A stretch of DNA of 64,000 bases from Lepidodermella squamata (lineage: Eukaryota; Animalia; Gastrotricha), in NCBI GenBank assembly GCA_047495785.1, contig JBLDXI010000055.1, positions 1,550,001-1,614,000 on the forward strand. The letters are read 5' to 3'. The notes below the pieces were generated by a model, which did not search any database, was not told where the DNA came from, and saw nothing but the letters and a program-made list of their open reading frames with translations. Both the position numbers and the translations under genes were made by a program. The first letter of the stretch is position 1. Every line of letters starts with the position of its first letter. This document shows positions 1 through 37,095 of this stretch, one piece after another.

Positions 1-562
1 GGAAAGTCTCTTTATTGCCACGTGGTATAAACTACGCCCAAGCAAAGATTCGGCTTGCAGCAATACTTTCCAGACGATTCTAGCCACAGACAACACGTTC
101 ACTTTCGCCATTGTCAACTACGCTGACATGGAATGGCCAGGTGAGAGGGTCTGCACAGACACGCCAAAAGAGGTCCGAGTCGGCTACGACAATCGTGAAC
201 ACGACCACGGGCGCCGCCACGAAGAGTCGCTATCTTGCCAGGCTAACGTAACTGAAGTCCGTAGAAATTCTAATGTCAACGTTCCAGGAACTTACATCTT
301 CCGCCTGGACAACGCTGGTCTGAATTATCTTGATAATGTTTACTACTACGTCAAGGACTTGTGGAGTGTTTGGGTGTGGTCTAGCCTATTCCTGTCCTTC
401 TCAGTCGGCATGTTGTTCAGCCTGTGCTGTGTTGCCTGCTGCTCGTGCTGCTGTGGCGGGAAAAGCAAGAAGAATAAGATGACACGAGCGAAACACTATC
501 GCCGCTTCGATGTTCGCCCATCTCCGCCAATCTATTCTGTGTACCCTGATGATTTGATGTAG
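1..562 (+). CDS. NIDO-domain single-pass membrane protein, paralogue 1 (5' end outside window)
   Basis: The frame is open from the window start (..FIATWYKLRP..NTFQTILATDNTFTFAIVNY, a NIDO signature). It continues into a TM helix, a Cys-rich juxtamembrane stretch and a PPIY tail, and is clearly paralogous to 790-1788. Confidence 0.85.
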   Translation, partial: ESLFIATWYKLRPSKDSACSNTFQTILATDNTFTFAIVNYADMEWPGERVCTDTPKEVRVGYDNREHDHGRRHEESLSCQANVTEVRRNSNVNVPGTYIFRLDNAGLNYLDNVYYYVKDLWSVWVWSSLFLSFSVGMLFSLCCVACCSCCCGGKSKKNKMTRAKHYRRFDVRPSPPIYSVYPDDLM

Positions 563-789
563 GTTTTTAGCAGAGAGTAAACATGAACCATTACGACTTA
601 TTTTGCAGCCCTTCAAAGTATTAATGGCCGCTCCCAATCCCCATGCCGTGACCCGGTGATTCAGCTGATCGCAATTTGCAATGAACAAACCAGGACTTTT
701 TGATTACCTGCGCTTAAGCTTGCTTTAAAACTGTTTTAGAAAAAATTGAATGATACCTTCTTTGTTTTCAATTTTAGAATTTGAAAACT

Positions 790-1788
790 ATGAAAACAGC
801 ATTGGTTTTCCTTGCTGGTGTTTTGGCCGTGCAAGCCAACAACGGTATTCTCAATCACCTCTTTCCATGGCCTCTAAGCCAAGACGACTTGCATTTGGAG
901 TTTGACCCGACTAAAGACGTCGTGTCGAAATACATTCCGCTTGAGTCGGCATATCTTGTAGGCAAACATGGAGAGAAAGGCCTTTACCTGCACAGCTCAG
1001 GAGCTATCTCTTTCCGCAACGACAGCGTTCCGCAGAATTCAGCCGGCATTTGTGGGCCTCAGAACGTGACCTTCCGCGGCATTGCGCCATTCTTGGCTCT
1101 CACCCGCTTCAACCAAGACAGCCGGGTAACTTATCGCGAAACCAACGACAAAGCACTGCTTCAACAAGCTGAATCTGAAATTGTTACATCGTACCCGATT
1201 TTCGAAGGTCTCAGGCTAGAGCGCATTTTCATTGCAACGTGGTTCAACCTACGACCGAGTGAAAATTACGCGTGCGAAAACACCTTCCAAACCGTTCTCG
1301 CCACAGACGGCACCTTCACCTTCGCCATCGTCAACTACATTCAAATGCAGTGGCCGGGTGAAAATCGTTGCAACGACGCGCCGTTAGAGGTTCGGGTCGG
1401 CTACGACAATCGCGAACACGGCCACGGCCATCGCCACGATATTCCTCTCTCCTGCCTGGCGAACGTCACCCTGGTGCAAACATCGTCGAACGTCAACATC
1501 CCCGGCAAGTACATTTACCGCTTGGATAACGCTGGCTTGAACTATCTTTCCTGGGCCTACCACTACATTCGAGATGTTTGGAGCATCTGGATGTGGTCTG
1601 GCTTGTTTTTGTCCTTCTCTTTTGGTATGCTCGTGAGCCTGTGCTGCGCTGCCTGTTGCTCGTGCTGCCTTGGCAGCTCGAAGAAAAAGCAGATGCGCCG
1701 TAAGTACCGTCGTCAAGCTAACGATTGCAACGTTAGCAGCATTCATCCTCCTGGCTACTCGGTTTACAACCCAGATGATTTTCTGTAA
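790..1788 (+). CDS. NIDO-domain single-pass membrane protein, paralogue 2 (intronless)
   Basis: ATG at 790 starts a signal peptide (MKTALVFLAGVLAVQA). NIDO motifs IAPF..VTYRE, FIATW and NTFQTVLATDG follow, then a TM helix, CCAACCSCC and a PPGY tail. Confidence 0.85.
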   Translation: MKTALVFLAGVLAVQANNGILNHLFPWPLSQDDLHLEFDPTKDVVSKYIPLESAYLVGKHGEKGLYLHSSGAISFRNDSVPQNSAGICGPQNVTFRGIAPFLALTRFNQDSRVTYRETNDKALLQQAESEIVTSYPIFEGLRLERIFIATWFNLRPSENYACENTFQTVLATDGTFTFAIVNYIQMQWPGENRCNDAPLEVRVGYDNREHGHGHRHDIPLSCLANVTLVQTSSNVNIPGKYIYRLDNAGLNYLSWAYHYIRDVWSIWMWSGLFLSFSFGMLVSLCCAACCSCCLGSSKKKQMRRKYRRQANDCNVSSIHPPGYSVYNPDDFL

Positions 1789-2545
1789 GTTCATATGTTT
1801 GTTTATATGCCCGTATTTTTTAATTCGTTCTTATGTGCTTTAACAGCCCACCCAAGTATTGAAGTGTGGTCCATATCGTAAATTGAATTCGTGACTTTTA
1901 CCGTGCTGCTTAAAATTTGATTGAGAAAAGCTTGCATTTCGTCAATTTAAATAAAACATCGTAATTGCCGATGCACCTACAAGGCTTTTTATTATATGCC
2001 TGTGGCCTGTGGTTTTAAAATTATCGCATAAAACAGTGCTGTTCAGTGTTCAGTGAATCGGTCCTCGAGTCATCTGCAGTCCTCTACTTCATTTAGGCAA
2101 GGCGAGGGCTAACAGGTAATGGACGACGGGCGCGTGGCCAAAATTTGGTGGAAGGCGAGCTTCCTCGGTGTTTCTATGCTTTCTGATTTATGGCATCAAA
2201 AGCTGGCCATCTCAAAGGTAGGCTCAAAACTGCGGGAGTCCACATTTAAGATTTAGCTTTTATGGTTACTTGGTGGGGTTTAGTTGGGGTTTATCTTGGT
2301 GGGGTTAGGGTTCAGTCCACCGAGTCGTCAACTTCACACATGTCTGAAAAGTGTTGTCTCTTCATAAAACGAATGAAAATTATGTTGACTTCATAAAATG
2401 AATTCTTATGCTAGGGCCAAAGAGAAATAATAAACATATATTCTATATCGACTTCTTGATTCTTTTTTTACGGTTATATCATCACAAGCAATTAATCAAA
2501 TAAAGCGAGTTCAGTCTGCTGAATCTATCACTCAGCGTGCAGCGG

Positions 2546-3685
2546 CTAAAATGGCGGCACCAAAGCTGCAAAAAAAACTAGATGAGTAATTAACTGGTTG
2601 AAATTATTATTTTTACGTTGTCGCAATGAGGCCAAATCCAAGCGTGCAATCTCGGGTAGAGCGCGAACCACGGTGCCCATGAATAGCGGACTGTACTTCA
2701 AAATGTGCTTTAGAACACTGTCGCTCAGTCCGCAAAAATATTCTCGGTCCTCGTCTTCGCTCTTTTCAACGCCAGGCTCCAACTCTTTTGGGACGGCCTC
2801 AGCCACAAATCCCAGCACTGCGTATGGAACACCAAGTTCCTGGAAGGCAACGACAAATCACAAATACACTTCAAAACGCGCGAAAAACCTTTGCTAAGAT
2901 AACTTCAGGAACTGTTGTTTGATCCATAACGTCTCCGCCGTATCCTCGGAACATTCGCAGTTCAGCTGGTGACGGCAGTCGAGGACCTTCGAAAGTTATG
3001 CAAATAGCTTTCTCGTGAACCTTAACAGCTGGGTCGGCATGAGCTGCCCGAGCCAAACATTCCCTTAGTTGTTTATTGAACGCCTGGCTCATTGGCGCAT
3101 GAAGAATTCCCTATTAGTCATTTTTACCGCGATATTGGTTACCTAAGCAAATCGCAGACTCTTTACCTTCAAGTGCTTACGATCTCCATCATAGAAAGTG
3201 TACGGGCCACGAGTTCCGCCGCGTGCGGTTTGATCAATGAAATCCGTCAGAATACACAGTTCGCCGACTTTAATATTCTCACCTCGAATAGAGAAGCTTG
3301 TCGACGAAGAAATGATAGCATCGCACTTGAGTTTATTCACAAGCGCGAAAATGTTAGCACGATAGTTAACCTGGGAAGGGCCTAACGGCAACATGCGAGT
3401 AGATATTACGATATTCTTATGACGAATTTAGCTGACCTACCCACAGCATGATGCTGGCCGTGCCTTGCTAGGAGTACCACTTCGACACCGTTCAGCGTTG
3501 TCCCGACAATAAGGTCAGATGACATGCCATATTTAGTGTCAATCGGGCCAAGCAGCTTTAGGTTCGGGTTCGGGCCAAACGGAAAACCTAGGCCGTCCAA
3601 GCCTGTCCCACAAATTATGCCGATCTAATGTTGAACGTTAACACGACTTGGGAAATTCGAATGGGTCTCATTTTACCTTCACCAT
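2546..3685 (-). CDS. MTAP: Divergent methylthioadenosine phosphorylase (PNP/MTAP family) paralogue, ~6 exons
   Basis: Spliced exons give MVK-IGIICGTG..LARHG..PSQVNYRANIFAL..DFIDQT..EGPRLPS..TTVPE..LAKELGVPYA. The last-exon boundary is approximate. Confidence 0.85.
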
Positions 3686-26632: not shown

Positions 26633-27834
26633 CTATAGGAATGTTTCTTCACAATTGCAATTGAAATTCGGTTTGCCGTTAACGATAGAAGACCTCGTTA
26701 GGAAACGGTTGCAAATCGCCTCGAATGGCGCTAAAATCGCCCTTCGAAATTCAGGAAAAAATGCAAAATAAAATGGCAGGTCGAGTCCCAACTCGGCTAT
26801 GATCAATATTACACCGGCTTGTTTAACACCTCGCTTGAAGCCGATGCTCCAGTCACCGAACCGGCGCCACAACACCTCGACGAGAACCGGATTCATTATC
26901 AGGCAGATTATTTCGATGAAGCAAGATAAGAATAGAGGGCCTAATAGCGTCAGCGTCATTGGGCGTTCTCGCTTTTTCTTCGCCTCAAGAGCCCATGAAA
27001 CAGCACTGCGTCGAGATGGCTCGCCAGCCCGGCTGTTGTAGACAGTTTTTGTCAGCAGGATAGCGAACGTGATAAGAACTACAACCGAACCTATAAAACA
27101 ATCGATGAGACTGAAAGATTCTTTGGCCAGGTGTTGTGTTACCGAAGTGAAAGATAATAAATCTGAAGTAGGTGTAGAAGGCGAACCAATTGAAATTCGA
27201 GTACATTATCGACCAGCGAGTTCGCCGACAGCCCGTGTTGAGATCCAAAGTATAGCCGAATATCTTAGGGATGTGTAAAATGCCTACAAGCAGCGCTGTG
27301 CAGCCGAAAATGAGCCATTTTCGATATTTCTTCTCGGGGTGATCGAAATTAGCCGCTCGCAAGTAAACATATCTGAAATATATTTTCAGAGCGATTTTTG
27401 ATTGAAAATCGAAGAGTATTCATGGGTGCCTACCTTTCGACAACAATTGTAACTAAAAATGCCAGAGGCAAGGCACCGGTGAAAACAAATGCAGGCCACA
27501 CGATGTAGGTATACAGAAATTCAGCCCAGAAAATGTCGCTGAAATGATGATAGATTACCATAGCCGCAGCCATAGAGAACAATGCCGCCGCGTGAACACC
27601 AGCTAAGATAGAGACGTAAGTACTCGTCGATCTTTGGAATCTTTTAACATCTCGCAAAATGCAGATAACAATCATATCGCCGATGAAACCGATCATGCAC
27701 ATTATCGGGACGATGGTGCCTAGAAACTCCACGTCATCGGTATCGATCGGTTTCTTGTTAAGACAGTCGATTTTGTAGCTTAGTTTCGGTGGTTTCAAGC
27801 GAACATGCGAAGTAGTTGTATTGTTGAAGCGCAT
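26633..27834 (-). CDS. Class A (rhodopsin-like) peptide-type GPCR, divergent, ~3 exons
   Basis: Hydrophobic TM segments, TM3 end TIVVER|Y across an intron, and TM7 DLPFYFAFFPEFRRA with a helix-8-like segment. The style resembles FMRFamide-receptor-like GPCRs. Confidence 0.7.
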
Positions 27835-28895
27835 TTCCGCCCGAGTGTCAGTAATCCTTTTACGTGTTGTAGTATTGAGATAGTAGAACGTGACTTTTTA
27901 CTTTCATCACCTGCGCTTGCCTTTAATTTTCGTGAAATTGTTTATATGGCAAACCATATACACATAAAAATCAAGATAAAATGAACTGCGTGGTTCAATG
28001 CCGCCAGATAATATTTGCTATAAAACAGCTATATACAGCGGTCGATCTTTCAGCACCTTTTTTGCCGCCAAGCAAGTAAAGCCGCGATCGATAGCGCAAC
28101 TCAATCAACGTTTCCATGAATGAGTTGGGAACCGCAAAACCCACATTTCAGCTAATTTCTGCATATATAACCAAGTAGCTAACAGACTTCTGACTTCGCC
28201 ATTTATTGCCAGTGTCGTAATAAGCGCATTAAATTTAAATAAATCCTCAAATTCCGTTAATTTAAAAAAAAATCCGCCTTAAAAAAAGAAGCACAACTAA
28301 AATGAAAAAACCAGTATCGAAGAAAAATTGCTATGAATATTAATGCGAAACTCATTGCGTGGACACGCATAAGTGAAGCCGAATTTTCAAGCTGTAAATT
28401 TGTCGCGTCACCAACGGACCAAATCGAATTGAAAATAACTGCAGAATGGTCGTCACATGATCTGCCTTATGTCATCGAAATTTCGCATCCTTTGGGAAAT
28501 CCACTCACATTTTATTTGACTTTCGATCCGCCTAATATGGCTGCTGCTTTGACGTCAATCAAGATGGTATTATCAGTGTTGAGTGCTGCTATCTGTTGCT
28601 GGATGAACCTTCAAGCGAAGCGATGATAACTTCGTTGGTAATGAGTTTCCCGACTTTGAAGTGGCGCTGGCTACGTTATACTTGTGAGTAATAATTACTC
28701 ACTTAGTGGAACCAGTGAATCCACAATTTTTCTATTGGCTGGTATTTTTAGTTACAGGCGCGCTCCTTAATGCTGTTGGTGGGTTTAAAAGGCACGCGAA
28801 TTTTCCATTTTTTTCAGTTTTATCTCACATTTTTCATCTGAACATTTCAACTCACATATTTTTTAATTTTTAATTAATTTTTTTAATTTATAATA

Positions 28896-29653
28896 ATGCT
28901 CGTCCGAATGACCGTCGTCGAGAGCGAAGGGTGGCACAAACTTGTTGTCAGCGAAATCCCATCTTTCGACGAACTACGATTCTCTGCGATGGAGGAACTT
29001 CATCTGGGTGAAGTTTACGGCTTCAACTATATGGATGCTAATGGTGAAAAAGTAATATTTTTTTATTTTTATGAATCATGCCTTGTATTGAGATTGCTTT
29101 CTAGGCCTGCTTCGCCACCGAGAAAAGCCTCAAAATTGCGCTTGCCGAATTGGGAGGAAAGCTCGACAAGCTGTGGGTGTTGCCGGCGGCTCCGGAAAGC
29201 CGATCAAGGGCTGGGTCTGTGAGCTCTTGCTCCAGTCGCCGATCAGCGTTCAAGTCAGTGGCGTTCTCATCACCGACGGCAAGTATTTCCTCGATCAGCG
29301 TTTCGCTTCCGAAAACTGCCTCGAAGCCAGATTCGACGCTCAAAGCGGCTTCTTCAACCATCACCCAGACGCCGAAGAAGCACAAGTCGAGGCGCTCGAA
29401 AGTCCGGAAAGGCGGCCGGCCTTACGCTCCGTACGACACCCCGGAGAAAGAAAGTATCAAAGCCCTCCTCGATTTCGGGCAAGAAAACGATTTTCCCGAA
29501 ACAATCGAATATAGCCCGCACATCAAGAGCTATAAAGCCGCTCAAGACCCCGATTTTATGGCTGTTTTCGGATCTCGCTCCAAGACCGCGGTGATGGACA
29601 AAATCAACGCGGAATGGAAGAAACTCATGGACACTGATACTGATTCCGAATAA
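28896..29653 (+). CDS. Transposon accessory protein (~234 aa): PB1-like N-terminus, Ser/Lys linker with KGGRP, Myb/SANT-like C-terminus
   Basis: The GT-AG intron at 29052-29104 joins two in-frame exons, and AATAAA follows at ~29742. Domain calls are by eye (PSFDELR..FNYMDANGEK..TEKSLKIAL; RSKTAVMDKINAEWKKL). Confidence 0.65.
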
Positions 29654-29851
29654 CTTTTCCACATATCTCATACTTTTGTTTTAATTCATTTTTTCAATTT
29701 TAAACCTGTTTTATGAGGCCAATAACATGAAGTTTTGATAAAATAAAGCCTTATCAATTTCTATTTTGACTTCTTAGTTCAATAATACCGTTCAAAAAAT
29801 TAAAAACTTGAAAATTTGACTTTTCACCCTATTTTCACTTTTCTCAACAAT

Positions 29852-30004
29852 CAGGGTTGTGATCGAAGAAAAAGTGTAAATTTGCAATTTTTATTACGCA
29901 ACATTGACCTTACCGATAAGAGCCAAATTTTACCCAGCGTTAGTCATACCCAAGAGCTACCTGTGATAGAAAAGGTTTGATTTTTTCTTTCGATCACAAC
30001 CCTG
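29852..30004. mobile_element. ~153-bp MITE-like element nested in the transposon
   Basis: Inverted ends CAGGGTTGTGATCGAAGAAAAA / TTTTTTCTTTCGATCACAACCCTG; no clear TSD. Confidence 0.6.
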
Positions 30005-31630
30005 GTATGCCATATATTATAGCCTGTTTCCAGCAATCATGCTTTTCAAAAATTAAACTAAAAGGGCCGATGTAATAGGTATGTAATATTTTTTAGGCTT
30101 AGCGTCTCATTAAATTTTGCCGGATTTGATTGCGGAAAATTATTCAATGTACCTAATTTCGATGATAGCTCAATTTTCGAACTAAACTTCGTGAAAAAAA
30201 GAAAGAAACCTGAAAATCCCGTGTTAATTGTTGATTGTTGGCGAAGATTAATTTCGAAAATTAATGTCCAAACACGTTATTTTTGTGTATAACTGACTTC
30301 AGTGAAAATTTAATAATTTCAGCAGCCATTGAGCCTATTCGATGCATGAGAAAGGTTAAGTTTAAGATTTTGAGTCCTAAGAAATGTCTTTCTTGATTAT
30401 AACACATCTTATGAAGAATAGATCTCGGTATTTTTATTTATTATAACTACTATCACTTAATTTGACGAGGATTATTGAAAATCATTCGAGATTAAAGTAA
30501 AACGTAAACACGAAGTTGATTATTCCGATTACAACATTAAACATAGAACGCGTTCGTCGTCAATCGCGAAACTGGCTGTCAGGAATTCAAGTTTCAAGTC
30601 CAGCCCTGCTCAGGATCAATTGGTATCGATTGGCGGAAAGCATGTTCACGCTCTGCTCGAGTAAGACTGATCCCTAATCGGCATTTTCGTACCACATGCT
30701 CTTCAAGCACGCTGATTTGGAATAGCACATCGCAAAAAGGACAGAATAAAAATATTCTGATTTTTGCGATATCATAAAAATATCGGTAAAATCTTCCTCG
30801 CTTGTATAAAAAAACTGAATTATCCATTCTACAAAAAATGCCAGCATTGAAGATAACTGATGAACAGGAATTTTATTGAAATTTTAAAACAAGAAAAAAG
30901 TTTAAAACAGGGTCAATTTTCAAATCAGAAAGTTCGACGATTGTTATTTCCGACGTATGTAAAACATTTTCAACCACAGCTGGCCAAGATCATCATCCCT
31001 GGAAAAGAGGTGGAATAAATACATTTTCACCAAATTACATATATTTACAAGCAGTGCCAAGAAGCCGTCATCTGAAAATTTAAGCAGATCACAAATTTCC
31101 CATTTTCAACATCTTGCTTATCCAAAGTAAGGGATTTCAAAAATTCTCGGCATGTTATTTTGATCGGCCTCTTCAGCGACCCAAACCTTGACCAAAAATG
31201 ACATTTTTTGTTGAATACCTTGGCATTTATTCTTACTTGCCGAAAGCGCCGCGGAACTGCCCAATGAAGCATGGCACATTCAACGTAAATTTACGCGGAA
31301 AGAAATGGGACCGCTTTGTTACCCGTTTCGATCTCAAAAGATGTTGAATGGCAGCACCTACTACTCTGCCGAGCGATCGCGCGTGATTAGCTCTAGACAG
31401 ATTAATCAATGAAACGTGGAAATGAATCGATTAAAAAAACGTACTTCGTGATTTTACGGCGAGAGCTCATATCAATGTAGTATTTCGATTTTTTCGATAA
31501 ATATTATTTTTTTGAAAATTTTAGCACAATCCTATTATGAAAATAAAGCGCAATAAAAACGACTAGCCTAAGATAAGAAGCTCTTATTTTTAGGAAATAA
31601 CGTAGACTTTTAATAATTTAGCCCAGCAAA

Positions 31631-34088
31631 ATGGCCCCGGTTCGGGCATTGAACTGCCCGGTTCGACATCCACCCCATTTACGATTGGTAAATTTATTCT
31701 TTAATTTTTCAAGTGACATACATATCTGATTTGCCAGCTCTGCGCGACTTGTAAAGCGGCAGCTAAAGCCGATGGGCGACGTGGGCCGAAATCTGTGCGT
31801 TTGTTGTTATGATTTAGATAATTCAGCCCTTAAATGATAGCGATTATCAGTCTAATCCTTCTGGCTTGCCTTACCATCAAATTCAAACAAAATCGGGGCG
31901 AAAAAAACGCATCGAAACGGTTTTAGCTGAGCATCTTAGTTCACTAACTAACAGCGAATTGTGGCGAGAGAAGATTGGCGATAAAAAGGTCGCGGAATGC
32001 GGTTTATTCATTCGTTTCGAAGGTTCGAAAAATGTCGTAAGGGTTGAGATGCCCCTAAAATCATCTGAAGAGCGCGATGAAATGCAAACAAAAGAAGCTG
32101 AGAGGTTATTTACTACTCATTATTTTATCTTCGCTTGCAATGAATTTTTTAGAGCTGTCAAGTTGCGGATGAGGCACGCGGTCTCAGGGCGGACATTTTT
32201 TAAACTCGCTAGGGCCCAAAATCCCAACCATCCTTCGCGCAGAAGACTGGTCAAAGCTCGCCGACGGCTTGCTAATTTTTTCCATATCACGACCCATAAG
32301 GAGCTTGAACACCGTGAGTATTTTTTTTAATTTGCCTCAAATATGATACTTTTAAAATAAAAAAATCAGGTAAACATAGAAGCGACGATTCGCCCAGAGA
32401 AAAAGGTGCCACGATTTCCCCGAAAGAAATTTTCGAGCACTGGGCAAATGCTAATATGCTGAAGCGTTACCCCGAAATTAATAAAATTAGGGTTCAAATC
32501 GACGGCATGGGGTCTCGATCAAATGTTGCCCAAGGCATTGTTTCATTTATTATTTGTCTTGAAGACAGGAAGAAGACAGCTGGAATTGATAATGAGTACC
32601 AAGTTGGTTTATACCAGGGCGAAGAAGATTCTGAGAATCTTCGACATTATTTTGCCGAAGTCTGTAGAGAGCTTGAGCAAATGTGTCGTGAAACCGTGAC
32701 AGATCGGCATAAAGGGCGAAAATACAAATTTTCGTTGATTTTATGTTGCGACTATATGATGCTAACAAAGGTAAAAGCACTGTATAAGCTACGAAATTCG
32801 AGTTTTCTGCCAACATTGCAATTTTAAGATTTTGGCCTGCGGCTCTCCAGGTAGCGACCACTCATGTGTCTTCTGTGTCGGCAATGTTGGGAACGGAGCT
32901 GGGAATGAGGGCCCTGCTCGCGACTTTGCCGAGCAATTTCGACTTCGCAGCAATGAGCAAGGCTGGTCTCTAGAATATTTGCCGCTTTTCGATCTGCCTC
33001 GCGAAATGCTAACAATTCTGCCATGCTGCCTACATATGTTTTCGGCCATAGCGCTTTCAATCTTGAATTCGGTAAGCTATGCAATAGGTTGGGAAGCAAT
33101 GAAAATAGGCTAAATAAATTATTGCAGCTGTTAACATTTATGCTGAGTAACAAGCTGAAAACGGCTTTTAGCAATGCGAAAGGGTTTTTAGAGCGTTCTT
33201 TGTTCAATTTGCGCGTGGATCCGTCGAACGACCCCAATGCAACAAAGCTGAAGCGGTACACACATAGTGGTATCGTCAAGGTTCGAATTTGATTCAAAAT
33301 TAATGTTATCGCTGATTTAAAATTTTTAAGGCCCTGCGCTGCTTGCATGAGAATACAACGCTGATGACTTTTTTGGAAGAAAACTGGCAAAGCAAATTGC
33401 TCGAGTCCAGATTTACTCTCGATATATTTGTCAGATTTTTGGATGAAAATAATGTCTCTCATCGTCGCAAATTACAGTCACCTGAAGCGAAAATTAAGAA
33501 GTGCTTGCAATTGCGCATGCCGGAGGCGGAAGAAGTGAGTTTCGTAAACAGAAATCTGGCCTTTTACACATGGATTTTACTATAAGCTTTCGTCATCATA
33601 CTAATTGTTTTACAGGTTATCGCGGGAGTGCTGTCTAAGTTCCGAGAATTCGATATTCTCATTGCGAGAACTATCGAGTTACTCGATCTCGTCGAATCTA
33701 ATGAGGTTCCCGAGAGCGATTTTGCGTTTCGCGAGTTCGAATTTTATTTTCAAGCTGCGATAGGAAATGTAACGCCCTATTCCCATGGTAAAGCTTTTTT
33801 GACCGATGGGTGATTTGCTAAAGGTTTAATATCTTAGTCTTGGCCAGCCATGTTTATTCCCTGATGAGGGCAGGCTACGACCTTCGAGCTTTGAGCGGCA
33901 TCTCAATTGAGTTGCGTATCAAAGCTCTCCGAAAGCTTTTATCTAGCACCGTTTTTTTCGGTGATCCGGTTTGCCGGCAACTAATGGAAAACCTGGTGAT
34001 TTCAGCAAATAATGATGAGTCCCCCTGCTACAGCTCAGAAGAAAGTGATGGCGAATTGAGTGAGATAGAAGAACTGGAATTTTCTTGA
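31631..34088 (+). CDS. RAG1/Transib-like DDE transposase, ~10 exons, ~650 aa, reading frame intact after splicing
   Basis: QIDGMG (D at 32501), CCDYMM (D at 32750), CVFC, PCCLH, TPYSHVLASH and GISIE (E at 33909) correspond to RAG1 D600, D708, C727/C730, H795, H937/H942 and E962. Confidence 0.85.
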
Positions 34089-34311
34089 AGAACTAGCGTG
34101 GTTGCAATCGGTAAAAATGAGTTAAAATGAAAATGTGACGTGAAAGAACCGAAATTAACAAGAAGTAAAATATTTAATGAAACATTTATTGAAACGTGTG
34201 ATCACGGGAAAAAAAATAAAATGGCGCGTGGCGCGCTTTTTGATCCAACCAATCAGCTTTTAAACCAGCCAGCCAATCAGGAAATTGTGGATTCACTGGT
34301 TCCACTAAGCA

Positions 34312-35269: not shown

Positions 35270-37095
35270 TTAGAAAACGTTCGGCGCTGAAACAAAGATT
35301 AAATTTGACGTAGTTACGGAAAGATTAGCAGGAAATGTGAGCTTACGATTGCGGAGAGCTTTCAAGTTGAGGCGGGCGATATCTTGAACAGCTCTTGCGA
35401 TTGTTCGAGCTGCACCCGGCGCAAAAGTTTTCATGTTTTCAAGAACAAGATCGTGGCTGACAGCCTCGGCTTCGTGCGAATGGCCGTTCGTGCAATCGTC
35501 AGCACCCGAGTCTAGATCCGTGATGAGCGCAAGAGTCGCATAGGGCACCCCCATTTCGTTGGCCAGACACACCTCAGGAACGGAGGTCATGCCAATCACA
35601 TGGCCGCCGAGCTGTGTGTGACAAAAAGCAGGTAATATCGAAAGAAGAAGAATCTCAATTGATCACCATTCGGAACATGTTGTGCTCAGCCTTCGAAGAA
35701 AAACGAGGGCCTTCTACGACAACAATTGTTCCACCGTCGTGAGCAATAATGCCTTCAGTTCGAGCTGCCCCGAGGAGAGCGCCTCTGAGCGGCTTCGAAA
35801 ACGGTTCAGCCATAGGACAATGCATCACTCCCTAATAAAACAAGACATTTTGGTTTATTAAATGGACGAGGCTATTCGGAAATAGCGAAACGTGTGTCAC
35901 GCTAATCGGAACGTGTGATTGGCTACTCGAACACAACCCTTCAAGTCAAGGAATACCGCTAATAGACTAGTGATAAGGCGATAATTGACCGGATTTAAGA
36001 CAGATTTAGCGGTTGTAGCATATTTACAAAGACTATATCTGATATTGTCTTGTATTCTTGATTTTAAACTCATCCTCACCGCCCCCGCCTCCAATGGTAT
36101 CAAGGGGTCTCACCTCTCACCTCGCCGCACGCTGTTAAGACGGGCCGGCACGCCGCGGGTTGAAATAAAACCGAAAGCTGACGTCCGGTGGCGTCAAGTT
36201 CGAGCTATCAAATCGCTAATTATCAGTTGCAATCCCGCCGCGCAGTAGCCTCTTGCCGGAATATTGGTTAAACTCGATGGTGGCCGTGCCTCAAAATCAA
36301 TGAGAGCGCCTTTATTGCTCATGATGATGATGCGCACTGTAATTTTGGACTAGGTATCATCCTGTTATGCTGGCATTTCGAATTTTCGCAGGTTCAACAT
36401 TTTCCGAACTAACAAAAAGTTGTTAAAATCCGAATTTCGATTATTAACAGGTGACTTAAGATGCTGTGTTCGGTGTTCGAATAGCCGAATGCGCGTACAC
36501 ACCACTTCACATCCACTTGTGTTCGAGTAGCCAGTCACGCACACACACTGTGTTCGAATCTTGGAGGAATAGACATTACTAGTACTATTACTCCAAGGTT
36601 CGAATAGCCATTAAATTTGAACATCTACGCTCTAACTTTCAAATGACCAGCTTCGCCATCATAGAAAGTCTGGGCCCCACGCTGGCCACCGCCACGGCTT
36701 GTGAAATCTAGAAACTGGTCAACAATGACGAGATCGCCGACACGATGAAGATCACTGCGTAGAGAACCAACGGCATTAGTCGCAATGATAGCATCGCAGT
36801 TCAAAATATCCGGGCTGCACATTGCAAAAATGTTGGCTCGGTAATTTACAGCTGACGGCGGCTTGCGATGATTTTTGCCGTGACGACCGATAAGAACAAC
36901 GTCGATGCCGTTCAAAACACCCTGTACCATCATGTCGGAGGTGAGGCCGTACGGGGTTTCGTACGGTGCCGGCAGTGGTTTCAAGTTGGAGATGAAAGCA
37001 GGGTCATCGAGACCGGTTCCTCCGATTATTGCAATCTTAACCCAACCGAATTTCAGTGACTACAAAAAATAGGCACCGGCACTTACCTTGACCAT
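35270..37095 (-). CDS. MTAP: S-methyl-5'-thioadenosine phosphorylase (canonical-looking copy), ~5 exons
   Basis: MVK-IAIIGGTG..GRHG..PPSAVNYRANIFA..DQFLDFT..EGPRFSSKAE..VIGMTSVPE..LITDLD. Confidence 0.9.
35870..36610. mobile_element. MITE/foldback-like insertion inflating an MTAP intron
   Basis: GGCTATTCG at ~35870 pairs with CGAATAGCC at ~36601-36609 and ~36478-36487. GTGATTGGCTACTCGAACACAA (~35915-35936) pairs with TTGTGTTCGAGTAGCCAGTCAC (~36517-36538). Confidence 0.6.

Follow-up and report, generated by a model that had tools for sequence, protein, structure and literature searches.

Within a 64,000-nt stretch of contig JBLDXI010000055.1 of Lepidodermella squamata (hereafter the window, to which all coordinates refer), positions 28702-34309 hold a 5,608-bp element that is bounded by terminal inverted repeats (TIRs) and carries a ten-exon transposase gene together with a smaller accessory gene. 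An earlier note on this DNA, made from the letters alone, had described the element as an intact-looking, RAG1-like DNA transposon, and its account of the anatomy was largely borne out: the TIRs are perfect over 28 bp, the proposed GT-AG open reading frame (ORF) of 10 exons and about 650 aa at 31631-34088 splices and translates without a stop into 650 aa, all listed core motifs stand in the order given, the gap of about 190 bp from stop to TIR measures 193 bp, and the accessory gene is recovered as a two-exon ORF of 234 aa. The principal features are:

28702-28742, + strand: left TIR, perfect over 28 bp at 28702-28729 and beginning CTTAGTGG; 41 nt at 90%
34269-34309, - strand: right TIR, perfect over 28 bp at 34282-34309
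28700-28701, no strand: putative target-site duplication (TSD) of 2 bp, CA, left copy, equal to 34310-34311; from a single element copy
34310-34311, no strand: right copy of the putative 2-bp TSD, CA, read from the sequence
31631-34088, + strand: transposase gene, 10 exons, 650 aa, from splicing and translation and from homology to two metagenome relatives, L006 and L001
31631-31687, 31738-31794, 31851-32104, 32153-32313 and 32370-32770, + strand: transposase exons 1-5
32829-33071, 33128-33280, 33331-33534, 33616-33787 and 33838-34088, + strand: transposase exons 6-10
32501-32752, + strand: exon 5 codons of the predicted catalytic residues D221 (32501-32503) and D304 (32750-32752)
32865-33035, + strand: codons of C323/C326 (the C(2)C motif) and H379, exon 6, invariant in relatives
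33784-33911, + strand: codons of H567/H572 (the H(4)H motif) and E592, exons 9-10, invariant in relatives
28896-29653, + strand: accessory gene, two exons (28896-29051 and 29105-29653), 234 aa, from splicing and translation

The two repeats are fully complementary across 28 bp (28702-28729 against 34282-34309) and 90% so across 41 nt, and the 28-mer occurs at two sites in the whole window, both of them the TIRs, where shuffles expect 0.00. The termini are CTTAG...CTAAG, with tips reading CTTAGTG. ProtoRAG/RAGL and Transib elements have CAC-starting TIRs resembling recombination signal sequences (RSS) as well as 5-bp TSDs, and RAGL elements carry a convergent RAG2L gene. The ends of the window element are of another kind, as had been claimed: no CAC-starting, RSS-like heptamer is found at the tips, and neither are the 5'-CA..TG-3' (CACTA-like) termini of elements of the CACTA/EnSpm-Mirage-Chapaev (CMC) group. 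Heptamer-like strings (CCAGTG, CAGTG, CACAAT) do lie in the inner half of the TIR at 28702-28729, away from the cleavage tip. CCAGCCAAT/CCAATCAG and GGCGCGC motifs, common to both subterminal regions, are candidate transposase-binding sites.

Identity between the flanks is confined to CA, with mismatches when 3, 4 or 5 bp are compared. The 5-bp flanks read ACTCA and CACTA, so the 5-bp TSD of Transib/RAG1L is absent from this one copy, and the 2-bp CA falls within the 2-4 bp of CMC elements, with a 1/16 chance expectation and in one copy. Of the short duplications proposed earlier, the 2-bp CA stands, and the offset 4-bp CACT was rejected, since it would require asymmetric element ends. CTTAG/CTAAG was likewise rejected as an imperfect 5-bp TSD, being merely a palindromic tip. 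Another reading, in which the TIRs begin GTGG and TA is duplicated within a CTTAAG target, is formally admissible and also gives 2 bp.

The nine GT-AG introns of the transposase gene measure 48-81 nt and leave a spliced ORF of 1,953 nt. An automatic path with the fewest introns (seven) yielded an implausible chain and was replaced by the nine-intron model with consensus splice sites. Two of the nine junctions are confirmed by homology, as they align ungapped to uninterrupted ORF of L006: exon 5/6 (aa 310/311; …CCDYMMLTK/ILACGSPG…) and exon 9/10 (aa 568; …TPYSH/VLASH…). Exons 1 and 2 encode 19 aa each, and the relatives show no conservation of this N-terminal region. Further along, the protein reads QIDGMG (D221), CCDYM (D304), CVFC (C323/C326), CCLHM (H379), TPYSHVLASH (H567/H572) and finally GISIE (E592). 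The corresponding core of mouse RAG1 is CDGMG (D600), YDEK..CxxC (D708, C727/C730), DALH (H795), TNYFHKTLAH (H937/H942) and SEGNE (E962), and two spacings in the window protein, D304-C323 (19) and H572-E592 (20), equal those of D708/C727 and H942/E962 as counted without alignment. The combination of D221, D304, C323-x2-C326, H567-x4-H572 and E592, all kept in L006 and L001, is that of the CACTA/EnSpm-Mirage-Chapaev-Transib (CMCT) clade, in which aspartate-aspartate-glutamate (DDE) transposases carry C(2)C and H(3-4)H after the second D and before the E, and elements have 2-5-bp TSDs and mostly CA..TG tips (PMC12730594). Since C(2)C and H(3-4)H are common to the whole clade, the motifs on which the RAG1 comparison had been built are clade-wide.

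The transposase belongs to a family that is extremely rare in the protein collections searched. With exon 5 as query, a full HMMER pass through 1.84 billion representative proteins returned four matches at E<=1e-3, all short unnamed metagenome fragments from ENA; profile searches of a 5.8-billion protein collection added P0006, P0007 and P0008 and nothing more, and no relatives were found on the metagenome contigs scanned from the Joint Genome Institute (JGI). In all, five clusters of unnamed metagenome fragments surfaced from among 1.8 to 5.8 billion proteins, and the family is unnamed in every protein resource searched, congruent with the earlier suggestion that it was possibly undescribed. 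The contigs behind the matches carry multi-ORF homologues. L006 aligns with the window transposase at aa 214-397 (32% identity, E 5e-21) and aa 559-617 (41%, E 7e-9); L001 matches it at aa 125-392 (E 1e-20) and again at aa 550-618. When the three are aligned together, identity with the window protein is 28% for L006 and 26.5% for L001. Invariant among the three are both aspartates (the second as DY), C..C, HM, an NW motif, G..T.Y.H.LA.H.Y and IE, a pattern that indicates selection on the presumed catalytic and zinc-binding residues.

The relative L006 represents a complete element of 3.25 kb (264-3511 of its metagenome contig), with termini CATTATAAC…GTTATAATG (CA...TG; CATTAT...ATAATG), TIRs CATTATAACTCGGTTTT/AAAATCAAGTTATAATG and flanks that share ATG, an apparent 3-bp duplication. 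Its transposase lies in two ORFs (830-1714 and 1759-2367), and a convergent two-exon partner gene occupies 3381-2663 (-). As this relative is TIR-bounded, the family as a whole would be borne by mobile elements, and ends and partner genes vary among its branches. The same element is present in three ENA samples (L006-L008). Small convergent ORFs past the transposase in L001 (6859-7095, -) and L006 (2663-2950, -) are alike (…IHHQIKAGLYNF…, …IHNEIVAGLFTF…); the likeness suggests that this branch has kept a partner gene, which is absent from the window element.

At the level of sequence, no RAG1 or Transib chain of the PDB was found at E<=10 with the exon query or with three family profiles, nor any RAG1 Pfam family at E<=10, so that the homology to the RAG1/Transib core expected of a Transib/RAG1L member is missing. 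The sole Pfam signal comes from DUF1280, which matches window exon 5 (E=8e-4, 19.5 bits, against a gathering cut-off of 25 bits) and L001 (E 0.042, 13.9 bits), in both cases on the beta3-alpha1 stretch and at the same end of the DUF1280 model. Transposase_21 reaches E 0.23 (11.1 bits) in one relative, and the window transposase gives no match to DUF1258. These families correspond to Chapaev (DUF1280), CACTA (Transposase_21) and Mirage (DUF1258), and DUF1280 has been grouped with RAG1 (Majorek et al., PMC3985635).

The window protein is spliced and has no single reference; P0006, the 294-aa N-terminal catalytic half of L006, was therefore modelled in its stead with AlphaFold2 (AF2), using a family alignment that included window exons 5 and 6. 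The model has a mean predicted local distance difference test score (pLDDT) of 68.8, rising to 80-93 in an RNase H core of the order beta1-beta2-beta3-alpha1-beta4-alpha2, where D109 in beta1 and D194 directly after beta4 are the equivalents of window D221 and D304. In a Foldseek search of the PDB, the top 43 consecutive matches were all HzTransib, RAG1 or BbRAGL (best E 3.7e-5), and VIA-align gave Z scores of 9.7 for RAG1, 8.3 for BbRAGL, 7.4 for HzTransib and 5.2 for the P element. A Foldseek-independent pass over 48,161 chains was led by the same six families (Z 7.1-8.9), the next match being unrelated at Z 5.8. Residues 32-294 of the model align with RAG1 460-820, in agreement with the first half of the motif correspondences put forward earlier. 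Thus the P0006 model has a RAG1-type RNase H core with a ZnC2 module, a feature not exclusive to Transib/RAG1L, and motifs and model concur with the earlier placement of the protein as a DDE transposase of the RAG1/Transib/CMC radiation. The C-terminal half was modelled poorly (pLDDT 51.9, predicted template modelling score 0.37) and left out of the structure searches.

How far the fold discriminates within the clade is another matter. No CMC transposase structure appeared in any search of solved structures, so that no solved structure other than RAG1/Transib could have matched a member of the clade. Among predicted structures, clusters of DUF1280, Transposase_21, unnamed fungal and arthropod proteins and RAG1 all match the P0006 model at a template modelling score (TM) of 0.49-0.58, and the same groups match the Atlas model of P0002 at TM 0.69-0.75. 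Embedding neighbours give a similar picture, with DUF1280 at 0.98, RAG1 at 0.96-0.97 and Transposase_21 at 0.93 for P0002, and DUF1280 at 0.93, RAG1_RNase_H at 0.92 and Transposase_21 at 0.89 for window exon 5. The structural check that had been proposed was hence answered in two ways: the P0006 model does match RAG1, BbRAGL and HzTransib, but predicted CMC and DUF1280 models match equally, and the RAG1 fold match cannot separate RAG1/Transib from CMC.

Aggregated, these findings make it probable that the element is an autonomous cut-and-paste transposon of the CMCT clade, representing a rare and unnamed lineage that cannot be assigned to Transib/RAG1L or to any of the named CMC superfamilies; it is a new family within an already known clade. 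The lineage is possibly Chapaev-like, the weak DUF1280 match being its only affinity at the sequence level. With Chapaev (CMC; DUF1280, PF06918) it shares a DDE transposase with C(2)C and H(3-4)H motifs, an animal host, the one Pfam signal of the window protein and of L001 in the same part of the model, and DUF1280 clusters at or near the top of both embedding and structure neighbours. It differs from Chapaev in the sub-threshold window score and the lack of a match from other family members, in tips that are not CA..TG, in the 2-bp duplication and in its extra genes. Repbase lists Chapaev with longer duplications than 2 bp, and in the same classification Mirage itself makes 2-bp duplications. 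CMC duplications overall are 2-4 bp (bioRxiv 10.64898/2026.08.26.747230), and the 2 bp seen here therefore fit a comparison with Mirage and EnSpm, from the former of which the window protein is set apart by the missing DUF1258 match. EnSpm/CACTA elements commonly have a second gene, and Transposase_21 clusters are structural neighbours (TM 0.51-0.58); unlike them, the window element has no CACTA termini, and within its family a single relative reaches Transposase_21, at no better than E=0.23. ESTA, Plavaka, Lanisha and CNEST of Cryptococcus are also divergent transposases that retain DDE, C(2)C and H(3-4)H, with a TSD length and cargo genes particular to each, and all recognised by remote homology only (PMC12730594; bioRxiv 10.1101/2025.05.19.654958). 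These groups, compared by description only, are mainly fungal or plant, whereas the window family comes from a small-intron animal genome and unnamed metagenome eukaryotes.

Several points weigh against this placement. The DUF1280 score lies below the Pfam cut-off and is given by two of about six family members; the modelled protein is a 28-32%-identical relative, from which the fold of the window's own protein is extrapolated; and the poor C-terminal model leaves the positions of E592 and H567/H572 to be assigned by motif conservation alone. Furthermore, the CTTAG...CTAAG tips differ from the 5'-CA..TG-3' of most CMCT elements, the 2-bp TSD is known from one copy only, with the chance expectation given above, and motifs, profiles and fold are the whole basis of the placement.

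The alternative that survives best, though we consider it unlikely, is that the element is a true member or sister of Transib/RAG1L, nearer RAG1 than any CMC group, with its ends and stagger changed. In its favor, all good solved-structure matches are RAG1, RAGL and Transib (Z 7.1-9.7, clearly above other solved folds), and the two spacings noted above are equal. Features in common with Transib, RAG1 and RAG1L are the RNase H core and ZnC2 fold, the order D, D, C(2)C, H, H(4)H, E and the TIR-bounded cut-and-paste design. For the C-terminal half, RAG1_ZnH2 clusters (0.92) are the sole embedding neighbours that carry a name, but these rows share just 148-160 features, which is low by the guide of the tool. 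Such a history would parallel that of Nozomi-related Transib elements, with their 3-bp or TA duplications and G-starting TIRs; Transib is internally varied, with TSDs of 5 bp, 3 bp or TA and a variable first TIR base (bioRxiv 10.64898/2026.08.26.747230), and the grouping of RAG1 with DUF1280 by Majorek et al. (PMC3985635) is also in its favor. Against it stand the missing 5-bp TSD and the tips without a CACAATG-like heptamer (heptamer-like strings lie inside the TIR only), and so do the sequence searches: at E<=10 the family profiles recovered neither RAG1 nor Transib, and there was no match to a RAG1 Pfam domain, whereas divergent Nozomi-lineage Transibs are reported to reach 100% HHpred probability to both HzTransib and RAG1 (bioRxiv 10.64898/2026.08.26.747230). 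Together with the equal match of predicted CMC and DUF1280 models, this argues for the wider CMCT placement. A RAG1-specific relationship of the element is not shown; the RAG1-like headline of the earlier note is not supported, given the lack of any RAG1/Transib sequence or Pfam match in the searches above and motifs and fold that are clade-wide in CMCT, and neither is the link it drew to the origin of V(D)J recombinase.

Doubtful to a greater degree is the idea of a deep separate branch between Chapaev and Transib/RAG1, closer to the RAG1 ancestor than is any named CMC group, whose partner proteins would act in a RAG2-like role. If true, the element would offer an independent example of a RAG1-fold transposase recruiting an accessory subunit.

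The partner genes themselves set the element apart from RAG1L (ProtoRAG). As had been noted, there is no RAG2: only 193 bp lie between transposase stop and TIR, no element ORF matches a Kelch or RAG2-like family, and in place of a convergent partner the element has an upstream, tandem orphan gene. The accessory protein is laid out as an N-terminal beta-rich part, whose coding region is split by the intron, a Ser-rich linker, an AT-hook-like RKGGRP motif and a C-terminal helical part. It matched no Pfam family, found no counterpart at E<=1 in a collection of 5.8 billion proteins and showed no similarity to the partner ORFs in the L006 and L001 loci. Positions 28856-28895 lie in an AT-rich leader that directly precedes its ATG. 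Two further features lie in the spacer of about 1.9 kb between the accessory and transposase genes:

29852-30004, no strand: palindromic unit of 153 bp with 22-nt arms (91%), in the element spacer
30594-31470, - strand: possible third gene, an unverified model of ~195 aa (best spliced chain) that diverges from the transposase gene

The arms of the palindromic unit, CAGGGTTGTGATCGAAGAAAAA, are 91% complementary, and the unit, which has no second copy within the window, could be a nested miniature inverted-repeat transposable element (MITE) or a structural hairpin. In the third-gene model, the last exon (30856-30594) would encode a UBZ-like C-x2-C-x11-H-x5-C zinc finger, FCPFCDVLFQISVLEEHVVRKC, with sub-threshold Pfam matches only (CEP104_ZnF 0.018, XAF1_C 0.053, zf-Di19 0.063). 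An AATAAA lies downstream of its stop, and about 160 bp separate its start from that of the transposase gene.

The least credible alternative takes the copy for a relic that no longer moves, or for a gene set retained (domesticated) by the host with its TIRs still in place, and the accessory ORFs for fortuitous or captured host fragments that play no part in transposition. It would suit the single copy in the window, the accessory protein without homologue anywhere, the elements of the relatives included, and the 1.9-kb spacer with its nested palindrome, but is opposed by intact catalytic and zinc residues throughout and by identical 28-bp TIRs with three uninterrupted frames, which point to a young insertion. 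Perfect TIRs and open frames likewise suggest that this copy of the proposed CMCT transposon is young, and make it plausible that it is potentially active.

As a CMCT transposon, the element would move by means of its 650-aa transposase, in which D221, D304 and E592 would form the catalytic triad of a DDE core with an RNase H fold, and C323/C326 and H567/H572 a zinc site that braces it. The enzyme would bind the 28-bp TIRs and excise the element, and integration with a 2-bp staggered cut would give rise to the CA duplication. The 234-aa protein, and possibly the third, zinc-finger protein, may serve as element-specific helpers, most likely as DNA-binding or assembly partners that are not RAG2 homologues.

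On this reading, the CMCT clade, which gave rise to RAG1 and has been sparsely sampled, gains an intact and probably young multi-gene family. The CTTAG ends, the 2-bp duplication and the one or more orphan partner genes accord with a recent view in which a RAG1-type core stays fixed amid labile ends, stagger and cargo. By itself, the element has no bearing on how V(D)J recombination originated; with an intact copy and perfect TIRs, it is a practical start for a transposition assay of a RAG1-fold enzyme outside Transib.

Finally, the surroundings of the relatives and of the element yielded some minor observations. On its 7.1-kb contig, L001 also carries an uninterrupted 644-aa ORF (1233-3167, -), head-to-head with the family member and with CACTA/Mirage-like motifs (…GMDGVRCF…, …DLPAAAMAKNMKPSGYYACGKC…, …EALHSCF…), which may be a second, different CMCT transposase. 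It gave no Pfam match, and hhalign of the family profile against it found a sensible aligned stretch at a non-significant probability of 0.6%. In the window, a seven-transmembrane receptor-like gene lies upstream (27430-27834, -) and a methylthioadenosine phosphorylase-like gene downstream (35270-36984, -), and the element appears to sit between host genes.

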